The position numbers were made by a program, and so were the translations under genes. From contig JALMLS010000455.1 in assembly GCA_038496445.1 (NCBI GenBank), positions 434,001-498,000 of the forward strand: a DNA stretch of 64,000 bases, given 5' to 3'. A model generated the notes under the pieces. The model worked only from the letters and a program-made list of their open reading frames with translations. It was not told the DNA's origin and made no database searches. This document shows, piece by piece, positions 50,221-56,411 of this stretch (position 1 is the stretch's first letter; every line of letters begins with the position of its first letter). The DNA is from Trichosphaerium sp. ATCC 40318 (Eukaryota > Protista > Tubulinea).

Positions 50221-50909
50221 GTGAATAAACAAGTCTGAAAGGCGAGTTTGTGAATGTGTAAAGCTCATTCACAATTAATTATGAAGACAAGTGTATCTAA
50301 AATGCAAAGCGTTTTGGTACACAAATAACTAACGACAAATATCAACAAAAGGCAATGCTTTTGTAAACAAGTTGCAGACACAATCTTGTAGCCAATAACT
50401 TTTTATGGTAAAGCTGTGCTGTTTTTCCATTCTTCCAGTCGCCATAGATATTCCCCTCTGGACTGAAGCTGTGTTGTGCAGCCATACTTAAGAGCAATAT
50501 CTCAATTTGGGTTAAGTTGCCAATGTTTATTTGAAATATAGCTTCTAGTGTCTACAAAAAAGGTATCACTTGTTCAAAAAAGCTGTATTGCCACTTGTTG
50601 TTTTAGGCCCTAATTTACTTGTACTATTCATTGCACAACCAGGCCGAAAAACAACTTGTTGTAAAATGACTCAGGTCTTAAAAAGATTTCCACTGACATC
50701 TACAAGAATAAGGTGCTGGGCAAGCTTATTATGAAAACTATGTACAAGATCTGTTATTAGTTGCACTTCTAACACTCTAGTATTGAACTAATGAAAGTAC
50801 TTCCAATTTCTATAAACATTTTTACAGCATACATAAACAAAAAGAGCCAAGTACATTATTTTTTTCTCTTTTTTTTTCTACTTTTTTTATAAAAAAACTG
50901 TGGTCATGT

Positions 50910-53900
50910 TCAGCGAGGATTACGCTCCATCACCCATACTTCAGGTCCTTTTCGTTTTCCATTAGATACCGACTCCTTTTCAGTAGAAGTAACCTAAAGA
51001 TAATACAAATTACTAAAAATGTACACGTGAGGTGTACTTACGTCGAATGCCTGTCGTTTAAAGAATTCCTACAAAAAAAAAAAATTAACACGTGGTTTTA
51101 TGTTTCTTTTCATTACTCACCACATTCGTGTCTTTATGTGTAAACAACCAACATTTAGATTGCTCATAGTCTTTAAAATTATGATTAGTATCCTTTTAAA
51201 CATTTAACTATAATACATACCAACAGTTTGCAGCATATTTTTCAACAACTCTGAACCGATTCCTTTCCTTTGCGTATCTGGATGAACAAATACACTCCAA
51301 AGAATCCAAGCATTATCAGGGCATTGATCCCTAATAAGTTTCTCCAAGTACGCATAATAATCTGTTATCAATCTGCTTGCTTTATTCAAACCACGCCATA
51401 GCTTGAAACCAACTAAAAAAAAAAGTGTTACTATTAACTATTGTCTCAAGATCAATGTGTATGTACCTCGCCACGTGCCCAGCCATTGAAGAAGAGCTTT
51501 ACTGTTTTTTGGAGAAATCCACAAAGCAGCGCCAACAAGTTTTTGACTTTGGTATCTTCCCCAAACGTTTCCCTAAACGCACGTGAATATCACGTGTCAC
51601 GAAAAAAAAGGAAAAATATGGACTAAACGCGCCGCTGACTCTGTGGCTTCTAACTGCACGTACTTGGCGAATACAAAGACGAACAATATCTGGATAAAGC
51701 TCCTCTGCCATGCACTGAAAAAAAAGTCAATAAAAAGTTCTGATGGAAAGAAAACAACGTACTCGTATTCGTTTATCATCTTTTTGTATGAGGTATGCAA
51801 TAGCTGGATTATTAATAAAGCATTCAGCCATCAGAGAAACAACATCAGAAACTTCTGATCGTGTCACAGGCTTTGTAATACCACTGCCTAACATAAAATT
51901 TAGTGTAAAACATAAACGTTAACATGAAGAGAAATACCAGCCAAACTAGTCGCCAAAGGTTTAAAATCGTTTGACCTTGTTAAATTCCCATTCTTCTTTT
52001 TACGCTACACAACAGTTGAATAAAACAGACAACCTTATAATGGTTACGTCATCATACCTTTCTTCTTCTTTTTGGATTAAACTCATCAAAGAATTGCTCC
52101 TTCATAATCTCTCTTACATTTGGTCTAAACACAGGATCCACTGTAAGCATTTTACAAGTAACCCTACAAAGATTCTCTAATCCCTAAACATAAATGTAAG
52201 GTCAAGTCAATAAAACGAACTAAATCAATTAAATCTTACATCTGGGAACTCATTTCTTATCCTGCTATGGATATCTGATGCCTCGGCTTCCTTGGCAAGA
52301 CATCTGTCATCAGCTGCGAGCAACCTGTGTCGAGCAAAGTTAGAAAACAAAGCATGGGTTTTTTTTGTTTTTTTTTTGGAATCTTACCTTGTTGTAGCGA
52401 GCTCGTATATGATGCATCCTAACGACTATAATCTTAGATATTATTGATAATTTACAAATACGGTTACGGACCCAAACATCAGCCTTATGATTGTATCTAA
52501 AGATGTAATGAGTTTAAATAATTAAAACAAAAATCAAATAAACTTACGGATGATTGTTAAGAAGTTCTGGTGCCCTATTTAGTTAACAATTAGTAATTGC
52601 TGGTAGGTAGCTCATATCGTACATATAATGCCATGTACCAGCTTTTTCTTTGGTACTATTCATCACTTGTTTTGCAAGGCCTTGAACAAGTAAGAAAACA
52701 AAAACCCTTGTTTCTGAAATATTGTACCAAAATCTCCGATTTTTAAGTTGTTGTTATTATCTACAAAAATATTTTCGAGCTTGAGGTCTCTGTGTACAAC
52801 GTTTCTCTTATTTACATCCAACATACCGGAGCACAATTGGTGTACCCACACCTTTAGTTGCTTCAAAAAGTGTCAAACAATACTATTTTGCCACGGAGAG
52901 AAAAAAATAGTACCTGTGCTGAAAATTTATCTCTTGCTGGGCCATCATAAGGCAACTTGAAGCTAATTGTCTTTTTTCTTTGGCGTCTAGAACTAGAAGA
53001 AGAATCTTCAGAAATACTCGTCTCGCTTAAAGCCGCTAGCGCTGATTGTCCGGCCTAAATAATATTTAGAACATATTAATAAAGTCGGTGGTTTCTATTC
53101 ACCTCTGAGTTGGAGGAATGAAAACGAAACGGTTGTTTGTTCTTTCTATTCCGTCGCGGAGAGTTTGAAGGCGATTGAAAACTCTTTTTTCTACGACTAC
53201 TACCTCTTTTAGCTTTCTATTTCCTAATACATTTAAAAAACTGCTTGGGCAAAATAATTATCACGAAAAAACCACAAAACGCCCAAACGGGCGTCTAAAA
53301 ATTCACGTGATAAATAAGGCAGTCACGTGACTTTTTGAAAAATAGAAAGGATTAAAAACTTGAAATTTTGATCGGATTGGCTTGTATTGCAGACCTTGGG
53401 GTTAGTTTGGCGTTTGATTTCGATGTGGTCATTGTCTTTAAGATATTGTCCAACTGTATCAGCATCACGAAGCGGAATACCATCCTTGACAAGCACCATT
53501 TTGAAAACAAGCTGTGGATTATTTACACGTAGTTTCCTCTTTAATTCTCCTACTGAATTCTCTGGGGATAGAGTAACATACATTGGAGAATGCCCAAGGT
53601 AAGTAGCATTAATAGTCACTTGAAGAAAAAAAAGTATTAATTCCTGTTTTTTGAATAACCCTTACAACTACGTACATGCTCTCAGCCTGTAATTATCTCC
53701 CACCATAACACTATATCTTCCTGCACCATCTAAACGTTGGGTATAAGTAAACACGTCATTTCATGACTTGTTATTTGAAATAACGGAACCGCACTCACTT
53801 TTGTTCTTTGCAAGATATTCTATCGCGCCTTCTAAGCTACTAGCGTGCTTTTCTGCAAGGCGTATATCTTCTATACTATATTTGAGCCTTCTTAACTCGT

Positions 53901-55424
53901 CAGTAAATCGAGGCCGACCATTAACAGAGTCCGTATCTATTGTGATAAGCAAGGAATAGAATTAAAAAACTATTTTGCTTACTGGCTCTGCTTCTTGCTG
54001 GTCTTGGGCTTGAGTTACGCCATCCTTTTCTCCTTATTTGTGCTCTTCTACCACGACCGTTTGTTGATTGATTCATTGCGCGTGTTATTGACTGTTTGCG
54101 ATTAGTTTTTCGCTTCTTTGAAATCTTTATTTTGCCATCTCTTGTAGACCTTTAGAAGCATTAACACAAGAAGCTGGGTGTATTGCGTGGAATGGAAAAA
54201 AAATTATTGCTCTAGACTTACTTCTCAGGTCTCTTTCTGATATTTGATGCTGAGTTTCTTGGCTCTAGCTTCTTTCGTAAATCAGATTCACTGTTTGATT
54301 TTCTTATATCAGACATCATAAGCCTTCTAATTCCAGGAGAAGATTTCGATACAGATGTACCATTAACTATTTTTAAAGTAAGTTTACACTATTTTTTTAT
54401 AATCGTTTATGCTTGTTTACAGCCTTTGGAAGTTGTCACAAGGGCATAAAAAAATGTCACGTGCTGAGTTTTTAAAAAATATTGAAAATAAAAATAACCG
54501 CCATTAAGGTTATGTTGTGTATGTATTAAAAAAGACGAAATGTACCACGCCAAGCACAAGGAAATTTGGTTTTGATTTTCTCATCAAATAAAAAAAATTG
54601 AGGTGGCGCTATTTTTACTTGCCTCCATTGTGGTTAGACGGTAGAGCAACAGGCGAAGGCATTCTGTTTTTAGAACCATTCCTTTTAGTCTTAACACGTG
54701 ATTTTGTTGTACGCGGCTTTTGTTTACGTATATCTAAGAGTACACTTTAGCAATAAAAGGGTAAAAACTACAACTCTCCACAAAATAAAAAAAAACAAAA
54801 AAAAAAGAAAAAAAGCTAAAAAACCCGACCACAGTATCGTTCTAGTGACTTCTTTTTATCTAACTAAGTAACTTCTACTATACTATAATCTATACCGCAC
54901 CTTCTAGAAGTTTTTCTCTTCGTTCTTTATCCTCTTCGATTGCTTTTTTGTTTGCATCGTATTTTGTAAGAACCTTATCAAAAAGAGATCCCATAGAGCA
55001 ATACTCCATTATAATACACAGAAAATAAATAGTCATGCCCTCCATTTCTTGAACATCTAGAAACACATCCTCATACCTTACAATATACTCACTACTAAAC
55101 TGGGCCAAGTATAGTGCCTTATATAGAACATTAGATGAGGCTCAAACTCAACAAAAAAAAAAGATCAAACAAGACAGTAACGCACTTCTTTTAGCCCAGC
55201 GTTAGCCTCTTGTAGGTCCGTACATAGTTTTTTCTTTAAAACGTATTGTTTATCTGTTTCCTTGAGTCGGACTAATAAAACATAAATAAGCTCGTTGAAG
55301 GTAATCACGTGATGTATAAACTAAACAAAAACGACAAAAAAAACGCTTAAAAAATTAACGGACCTAGTATACAAACGCCTTCACCTCCCTTGCCTATCTC
55401 TCTTATAACCTCGTACTTTTCCAT
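50910..55424 (-). CDS. NEK-like Ser/Thr kinase with internal UBA-like and ubiquitin-like domains and a C-terminal GNAT acetyltransferase
   Basis: [30 protein letters not shown], then an insert, then [30 protein letters not shown], then FINNP and [17 protein letters not shown]. All introns are phase-compatible. Confidence 0.8.
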
Positions 55425-56411
55425 AGCACGTGAGGTACTATTAATCCCAAATAGAAATATACTAAGCGCCTTTTAATCACGCTCTCGTGTCACCATCATA
55501 CAATTCACAAAAGGGATCAATTTTATTCAACTTTTTTCAATAACACTACTTTTTGTATGGCGTCATCACTGTGAAGATACTTTTGGGTTTGGCACTTTTC
55601 TTAAGCTACCGACAAGTTAACTGAAATAGAAAAAGTAAAAATAACTTACAGACACAAAAAAGAGAAAAACGGTGTCTTTCTCATTTATTTTTTTTAATTG
55701 ATGCTAATTATAATTGTCTTTTATTAAACAGGTCATTGTAGAGATGTTTGATTTAACAACGAGATAATCTGTTATTATTTTGTGTACAAAAACTACTAGT
55801 GCTTCATTAAACTTACCTAGGTAAGTCGTGGATGCCGATAGTAAAGTCTGGCAATACAATGATTTACTTGTAGTACATTCGACAATGACAACCTTAACCA
55901 CGATCGAGACAGCGGATATTACGGAGAAGTTACAAATTGAGGGTTCCAGAAGAAGTAGCACAGGTTGTCCTGAGCATTTTATCAACGATGACTTATTGTT
56001 TTGCAATGATCATGATTGTCAACAAGAGAATTTATTGGAAGCAATTGTTTATTTAAGTGGTTTTTATGTCTTGGTGAGCTGTTGACGCATAACTGTCATT
56101 TCAGAGAGTGTTTTTGATTAGTTTGGATGAACTTACAGCACATTTAGTGATTGGGTAGCTCAGTTTCGAGCCATTCGTAGCACTCATTGTTTCAATCAAA
56201 CTATGTATCAACATTGTGTGCACAAACCAGCTCGATTCAAATTGTGCAAAATGCCGAGTTAGAGGCTTCGTGAGACCAAATATGATGCTACAGGCACACC
56301 TAAAAAACTTAGGGAGAAAAAGTAAACTCAAATCTCAATAAATTACAAACAAGTTGTTTGCAATCCTTCGTTAACGTTGTTGTGATGAGTACTCTAGGAA
56401 GAAAAGAGAAA

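Follow-up and report, generated by a model that had tools for sequence, protein, structure and literature searches.

A NEK-like kinase split by a basic insert with predicted UBA-like and ubiquitin-like modules and joined to a puromycin-acetyltransferase-like GNAT in Trichosphaerium

Described systems closest to the gene

Several described protein families share one part or another of the gene considered here, which in Trichosphaerium sp. ATCC 40318 (Tubulinea) encodes a protein kinase interrupted by a long insert and followed by an acetyltransferase of the GNAT superfamily. The gene lies on the minus strand, at 55424-50910 of a 64,000-nucleotide stretch of contig JALMLS010000455.1 (assembly GCA_038496445.1, positions 434,001 to 498,000). 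This whole stretch is called the window, and all coordinates below refer to it. The predicted insert modules resemble ubiquitin-associated (UBA) and ubiquitin-like (Ubl) domains, and the closest described systems are therefore found among split kinases, kinases that carry ubiquitin-related domains, ubiquitin shuttle proteins, and GNAT enzymes.

Receptor tyrosine kinases of classes III and V (PDGFR, KIT, VEGFR) carry a kinase insert domain between helices alphaD and alphaE. It is ~70-100 residues long and consists mostly of disordered sequence for phosphotyrosine docking. The Trichosphaerium kinase is interrupted at the equivalent position of its catalytic domain. However, its insert is 384 residues long and strongly basic, holds two apparently folded modules, and shows no sequence relationship to the receptor inserts. 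Ubiquitin-related modules next to a kinase are also familiar: the AMPK-related MARK/SIK kinases have an adjacent UBA domain, and IKK-beta/TBK1 as well as the plant UbDK-gamma have an adjacent Ubl. In these proteins the modules lie beside the kinase, whereas in the Trichosphaerium protein they would lie within the catalytic domain. UBA and Ubl domains occur together in the shuttle proteins Rad23, Dsk2/ubiquilin, and Ddi1, and the two predicted modules likewise share one polypeptide here. Structural neighbours point the same way, with Ddi1, Dsk2, and the HHR23A UBA found for the helical module and the Rad23 UBL for the module encoded by exon 9. The arrangement differs from that of the shuttles, however, in that the UBA-like module comes before the Ubl, the two are ~20 residues apart, the pair is enclosed in a kinase domain, and the UBA-like module has no sequence-level UBA match.

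The kinase resembles the NEK family in being N-terminal from residue 1, in its MEKYE...GKG pattern, and in that NEK1, NEK2, and NEK7 rank high among the solved structures related to either lobe. The identity is modest, however, PLK1 and GCN2 give similar scores, and the activation segment reads GTWHYMAPE. We know of no NEK with folded domains in an alphaD-alphaE insert or with a GNAT tail. The tail is homologous throughout its ~200 residues to puromycin N-acetyltransferase (PAC; PDB 7k09), with QRKGIG in motif A where PAC has QGKGLG and with a GP.xW.M.R.P strand common to both. PAC stands alone as a protein of ~200-260 residues, whereas the Trichosphaerium domain forms the C-terminal end of a kinase protein. 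A GNAT and a phosphotransferase of the protein-kinase fold do share one polypeptide in the bacterial AAC(6')-APH(2''), in which the GNAT comes first and is followed by the small-molecule phosphotransferase APH. The likeness is one of analogy only; the Trichosphaerium protein has a eukaryotic protein kinase with an HRDLKxxN loop, and its GNAT comes last.

One gene and one spliced transcript

The gene is expressed as a single mRNA that joins the N-lobe and C-lobe of the kinase, the insert between them, and the GNAT, and a public polyadenylated transcript contains all of its exons in spliced form. The architecture of a kinase split by an insert and ending in a GNAT is almost certainly real. The initial annotation had placed all of these parts in one open reading frame of about 20 exons. 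The joined, in-phase frame stood, while the number of exons proved to be 26. The 26-exon model was derived from the minus strand of 50700-55700 and then checked by arithmetic on the window. The exons join in phase and total 2652 nt, equal to 883 codons plus a TGA stop, with no internal stop; none of the 14 codons split by a junction is a stop codon either. The 25 introns measure 46-256 nt and comprise 24 of the GT-AG class and one of the GC-AG class. The window is AT-rich (34-40% GC) and abounds in very short introns. On recheck, every motif quoted in the initial annotation was found at the right place, as were its start and stop and its UBA-like and Ubl stretches.

The evidence for the transcript came from an exhaustive HMMER search with GNAT exon 23 (exons were searched singly, and the whole-protein and domain steps used the public proteins and transcript contig described here). 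It returned P0001, a protein of 871 residues with a 100% identical match, whose 90% cluster also includes P0006, a protein of 883 residues. Both come from Joint Genome Institute (JGI) sample 3300016894, where their source contigs are 2873 nt (L007) and 2825 nt (L006) long. Because these contigs scarcely exceed their reading frames, they must represent spliced transcripts. L006 holds all 26 exons contiguously, 24 of them exactly. The remaining two, exons 6 and 17, occupy exact slots of 167 nt and 85 nt and differ from the genome by five synonymous single-nucleotide differences only. All 26 exon peptides accordingly appear at consecutive offsets in P0006, the product of L006. The 65-nt leader of L006 is identical to 55489-55425 of the window, and right after 50807 the contig finishes with a run of A for which the genome has no counterpart, an indication of a poly(A) tail. 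L006 spans all parts of the protein, and no transcript end was found between the two lobes or ahead of the GNAT. The transcribed unit and the features that bear on its splicing are as follows.

50807..55489, minus strand: transcribed unit with a 65-nt 5' leader, 26 exons, a 3' untranslated region of ~103 nt, and a poly(A) site near 50807, from the alignment of L006 and L007
54367..54622, minus strand: intron 4 (256 nt), the sole GC-AG intron, with donor GCAAGT at 54622 (canonical for the GC class); the junction of exons 4 and 5 is exact and contiguous in L006
51892..51894, minus strand: in-frame ATG within intron 19 and 7 nt ahead of exon 20, spliced out in both contigs; a separate GNAT gene could conceivably start nowhere else
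50994..51041, minus strand: intron 25 (48 nt), kept in L007, which equals L006 plus 48 nt at this place

The five differences between genome and transcript are the only ones in the coding sequence. All are third-position transitions, and four of them fall in exon 6, which encodes a central part of the low-complexity insert. The chance that five of five differences would be synonymous without selection is ~0.003. This is evidence, from a small sample, that the insert is translated in the proposed frame.

Other ways of joining the exons were considered. A GT donor for intron 4 at 54618 would leave phase 2 and clash with exon 5, while the GC donor at 54622 fits and is confirmed by the transcript. 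An insert-free form in which exon 3 is spliced straight to exon 12 would join phase 1 to phase 0, run out of frame, and reach a stop, and the only in-phase shortcut around the insert would remove alphaD; both were rejected. The product of L007 departs from P0006 at residue 858, so that the last 27 residues are swapped for 15 others and the conserved last GNAT strand is lost. This 871-residue tail, in which intron 25 is read through, was rejected as the main form since a homologue from another organism (P0004, from contig L005) matches the spliced tail with its GP.xW.M.R.P strand. Retention of intron 25 could be a regulated isoform or merely unspliced RNA in the assembly.

The kinase domain and its point of interruption

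The two halves of the kinase occupy the following exons.

54901..55424, minus strand: exons 1-3, kinase N-lobe, hinge, and alphaD (residues 1-~102) with the first ~20 residues of the insert; GKGGEG, VLKK, and MEYCSMGSL, and a Pfam Pkinase match on exon 3
52058..52860, minus strand: exons 12-18, kinase C-lobe (residues 487-650), which runs from alphaE to subdomain XI and contains [14 protein letters not shown] and DVWSLG

The Pfam Pkinase family (PF00069) matches P0006 as a whole with 163.6 bits (cut-off 31.7), and the match falls into two stretches, one on each side of the insert. Scanned as single exons, exon 12 matches at E 6e-11 and exon 3 at E 1.4e-3. The motifs expected of a working kinase are intact: GKGGEG at residue 11, VLKK at 31, HRDLKLEN at 509, DFG at 529, and APE at 551. 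MEYCSMGSL is at residue 86. The N-lobe has NEK1, NEK2, and GCN2 as neighbours in the PDB, and the C-lobe has NEK1/2/7 and PLK1.

Where exactly does the insert begin and end? The nearest kinase in the databases, a NEK-like protein from an MMETSP transcript (P0007), is 35-38% identical to P0006 and collinear with it apart from the insert. It aligns with residues 1-98 and 483-643, two blocks that in P0007 are separated by no more than seven residues. This alignment defines the insert as residues 99-482, 384 residues in the alphaD-alphaE loop, which bears out both the position and the length of ~380 residues first suggested for it. P0007 has GTPYYLSPE in its activation segment, and the GTWHYMAPE of the Trichosphaerium protein departs from the NEK signature GTP.Y.SPE. 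Judged by its motifs, the kinase would be a catalytically intact, NEK-like serine/threonine kinase, though not a proven NEK, given the similar scores of PLK1 and GCN2.

The contents of the insert

The insert is in phase across eight exons and is present in the mRNA. It appears to consist of two basic tethers and, between them, two patches of normal composition that correspond to the UBA-like and Ubl modules.

52914..54733, minus strand: exons 4-11, most of the insert of 384 residues (99-482), in which tethers rich in K, R, and S flank the UBA-like and Ubl modules
53799..53936, minus strand: exon 7, predicted UBA-like three-helix bundle (residues ~274-307), from an AlphaFold2 single-sequence model and VIA-align
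53395..53618, minus strand: exon 9, putative ubiquitin-like beta-grasp (residues 328-~398), with no C-terminal Gly-Gly, from a sub-threshold Pfam ubiquitin match and a model

The tethers (residues 99-271 and 399-482) are very basic and probably disordered. They contain 26-30% K+R, 18-25% S+T, and 12-16% hydrophobic residues, have net charges of +37 and +16, and show clusters of K and R at ~215-225, 422, and 461. No Pfam family matched either of them.

Both modules had been named in the initial annotation. For the UBA, a three-helix bundle with UBA neighbours is predicted, while a match at the level of sequence did not emerge. A piece of 138 residues (266-403), folded from its single sequence, gives helices at 274-279, 284-293, and 297-307 with predicted local distance difference test (pLDDT) values of 64-79. 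Compared with 48,161 chains by VIA-align, the helical module has as neighbours UBAP1 (Z 6.0), Ddi1 (5.5), USP5 (5.5), a human UBA (5.4), and Dsk2 (5.2), followed by HHR23A, Mud1, and Ede1, these UBA matches covering a Z range of 6.0-4.5; the UBA-like N-domains of EF-Ts and CUE domains are also among the neighbours. Most of the top 20 structural matches are UBA or UBA-like. On these predicted structures, the identity of the module as a UBA is plausible, with a chance slightly above even.

The Ubl fared better, although its Pfam score stays under the gathering cut-off. Exon 9 alone matches the Pfam ubiquitin family (PF00240) at 21.0 bits (E 2.9e-4) and exons 8-9 together at 20.1 bits; ubiquitin is the sole Pfam family matched by exon 9. 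A single-sequence model of this exon has a pLDDT of 66 and the order beta-alpha-beta-beta-alpha-beta. In a Foldseek search nearly all of the top 50 matches are ubiquitin, SUMO, or Ubl, yet none has an E-value better than 0.17. VIA-align also returns mostly Ubl domains (tubulin cofactor B, midnolin, FUBI, ISG15, and Rad23). The sub-threshold family match and the fold matches together make a beta-grasp Ubl likely. There is no Gly-Gly in residues 386-410. The Ubl would thus be an internal domain and not a modifier, since it lacks the Gly-Gly end.

Exons 7 and 8 (53676-53936) are symmetric, with phase 1 at both ends, and exon 9 (53395-53618) is entered in phase 1. With these phases, isoforms that lack exons 4-6, exons 10-11, or both, and that retain the UBA-Ubl exons, would keep the frame. 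No transcript dropping exons 4-6 and/or exons 10-11 was seen.

The acetyltransferase tail and its relatives

The protein continues from the kinase C-lobe through a short linker into the GNAT.

51938..52004, minus strand: exon 19, basic kinase-GNAT linker (residues 651-672), spliced in L006, with its length and C-terminal part conserved in L005
50910..51887, minus strand: exons 20-26, GNAT (residues 673-883), similar to puromycin N-acetyltransferase, with motif A QRKGIG at 814

The presence of a GNAT with an intact acetyl-CoA motif, as first proposed, is upheld by Pfam scores above the cut-offs: on P0006, Acetyltransf_7 (PF13508) scores 29.1 bits (cut-off 27) and Acetyltransf_1 (PF00583) 26.9 bits (cut-off 20.7). 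Exon 23 alone matches the two families at E 3-5e-6. In a comparison with solved structures, residues 660-883 match PDB 7k09 at E 2.1e-9, over positions 20-223 of 224 in the query and 12-199 of 208 in the chain. The match takes in motif A and the C-terminal GP.xW.M.R.P strand, and it is the only clear solved relative. The neighbours in a language-model atlas are GNATs of bacteria and fungi that stand alone as proteins of 200-260 residues, with a cluster named 'Puromycin N-acetyltransferase family' at a score of 0.97. By these comparisons the tail is a full-length homologue of puromycin N-acetyltransferase, although the class of substrate cannot be deduced from similarity of this degree. The initial annotation had implied a protein acetyltransferase. 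No relation to protein lysine acetyltransferases is visible, and the clear relatives are of the puromycin type and acetylate a small-molecule amine, so this part of the proposal was not borne out.

Further evidence on the fusion comes from a second organism. P0004, a protein of 114 residues found in the same exhaustive HMMER search, is 50% identical to exon 23. Its source, L005, is an environmental transcript contig of 965 nt from JGI sample 3300030603 and belongs to a different organism. L005 encodes kinase subdomains IX-XI with 32% identity, including the distinctive LLAA[DE][DE]RCLA, then a linker of similar length with a conserved C-terminal part (...LA.S...GITKP), and then the whole GNAT with 39% identity, to its GP.xW.M.R.P end. 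At the level of sequence, the junction of kinase and GNAT is thus conserved in this organism.

How common is such a protein? The search with exon 23 gave five matches in all. Apart from P0001, which is the gene's own product, and P0004, these were P0002 and P0003, which are artefacts of repeats or low complexity, and P0005, a tandem GNAT of bacterial type; the last three were rejected as relatives of the architecture. A word search with the whole of P0006 gave 939 kinase matches at E <=0.001, and among the best 120 of these only the gene's own product had a GNAT in its Pfam list. Only the protein itself was found when the GNAT region was searched in the same way among proteins of 486-1545 residues, and metagenome scans with patterns for the GNAT and the kinase end gave no relative. 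Searches of the organism's own 70.3-Mb assembly with exons 3, 7, 9, and 23 returned only the gene itself, and the tested exons are single copy. We found no published description of a kinase-GNAT protein or of a UBA/Ubl pair in a kinase insert. The architecture, which had not been recognised at the outset, is thus near-absent from very large collections in which billions of proteins were searched. Its rarity partly reflects poor sampling of the lineage. The parts are known, while the combination and the arrangement appear to be new, and the only other kinase-GNAT fusion found is the one environmental transcript.

A side observation concerns the hexamer CACGTG, a palindrome that occurs 56 times in the window against an expectation of 9.0 +/- 3.0. 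Eleven copies are located in the gene (51024, 51089, 51472, 51580, 51591, 53304, 53324, 54458, 54695, 55306, and 55427). Eight of them are in introns (1863 nt), two are in exons (2652 nt), and one immediately precedes the ATG. Of the five introns that exceed 90 nt, four contain the hexamer.

Possible modes of action and competing explanations

How might the parts work together? The explanation that we consider reasonably probable is that of a split NEK-like kinase with a UBA/Ubl insert and a puromycin-type GNAT, acting along the following lines; the functional picture taken alone is tentative, with clearly less than an even chance. The kinase lobes would assemble in the usual way, and the insert would project as a loop behind the hinge. 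The UBA-Ubl pair may serve as a shuttle cassette of the Rad23/Dsk2 type that docks the enzyme on ubiquitin-marked partners or on proteasome receptors. Alternatively, the pair may act as a regulatory latch by folding back on itself or on the kinase. The protein could be directed to the nucleus or nucleolus, or bound to polyanions, through its basic tethers and linker, which would also be likely sites of autophosphorylation. The GNAT may acetylate an amine of a target brought close by the same scaffold, whether a protein N-terminus, a lysine, or a small molecule, the last being included because the nearest relatives act on one. The proposal that a single reader/writer couples phosphorylation, ubiquitin binding, and acetylation is wholly conjectural. 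A more specific form of it is that the UBA-Ubl pair acts as an allosteric switch, in which ubiquitin or a ubiquitin chain on the UBA displaces the Ubl and alters the kinase, while the GNAT acetylates the same ubiquitin-marked target. This form is very improbable. If it were true, one polypeptide would read ubiquitin and write both phosphate and acetyl, for example by capping lysines against further ubiquitination.

Several results weigh against the explanation of a split kinase with ubiquitin-related modules and an acetylating partner, and three other explanations draw on them. The transcript contigs L006 and L007 are short-read assemblies and not single molecules. Together with the in-frame ATG 7 nt upstream of exon 20, this would suit a false union of two or three neighbouring genes, by a wrong model, read-through, or chimeric assembly, with the GNAT starting at ATG 51894. 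However, L006 removes all 25 introns precisely, including introns 18 and 19 on either side of the linker exon. There is no stop between the parts and no room for a promoter, because these two introns are only 53 and 50 nt long. Each half of the kinase is incomplete and supplies exactly what the other lacks, and the same junction of kinase end and GNAT is present in the transcript of a different organism. That transcript has weak points of its own, in that L005 begins inside the C-lobe, so that it covers no part of the insert region, and has a one-base frame break at ~nt 495-505, between the GNAT halves, which is either an assembly error or a real frameshift. On this evidence a false union is extremely unlikely.

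The contents of the insert are more contested. The insert could be a lineage-specific disordered spacer, in which the 'UBA' and 'Ubl' are generic folds unlinked to the ubiquitin system and used, for example, for docking protein or nucleic acid. The flanks of the insert are extremely basic, and disordered spacers are seen in many protist kinases. The helical module matched no Pfam family and no PDB sequence at E up to 10, its Z scores of 6 or less are inside the range that the tool itself describes as common or noise for helical models, and small three-helix bundles are a common arrangement. The Ubl scores fall under the gathering cut-off of 25.4 bits, its VIA-align Z is only 4.5 or less, again in the common range, and its model is mediocre, with a pLDDT that drops from 66 for the exon alone to below 50 in the longer construct (266-403). 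A word search with the Ubl exon gave no candidate homologue, and an atlas look-up of the UBA-Ubl region, with scores of 0.75-0.78, was below the level of a lead and was not used. On the other hand, the neighbours of the helical part do not look random, in that UBA or UBA-like domains make up most of the first 20; two aligners place exon 9 mostly among ubiquitin and Ubl domains, and no Pfam family other than ubiquitin matches it; and the co-occurrence of UBA and Ubl is known from shuttle proteins. We consider a generic spacer unlikely, though it deserves to be taken seriously. A similarly low but real chance is given to the explanation that the GNAT is an N-acetyltransferase of small molecules (an aminonucleoside or another amine) that works independently of the kinase, so that the fusion merely co-expresses or co-localises the two. 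The action of its relatives on a small molecule weakens the case for a protein-acetylating partner of the kinase. Puromycin N-acetyltransferase matches nearly the whole domain, including the GP.xW.M.R.P strand, and the atlas neighbours are stand-alone enzymes that include its family cluster. Yet the fusion, the length of the linker, and the C-terminal residues of the linker are kept between organisms that are 32-39% identical, which suggests that the junction matters. It is also established for the GNAT superfamily that the class of substrate is unreadable at this similarity.

Significance of the architecture

Protists have many unusual kinase architectures, and the present gene does not on its own settle a long-standing question. 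If its parts cooperate, the protein would be a case in which nature connects three major systems of protein modification within one chain. It would also show, by a natural example, what amount of folded sequence the alphaD-alphaE loop of a kinase can accommodate, which would be useful for kinase engineering. Finally, the protein may provide a functional context for the eukaryotic GNATs that resemble puromycin N-acetyltransferase, which are poorly understood.

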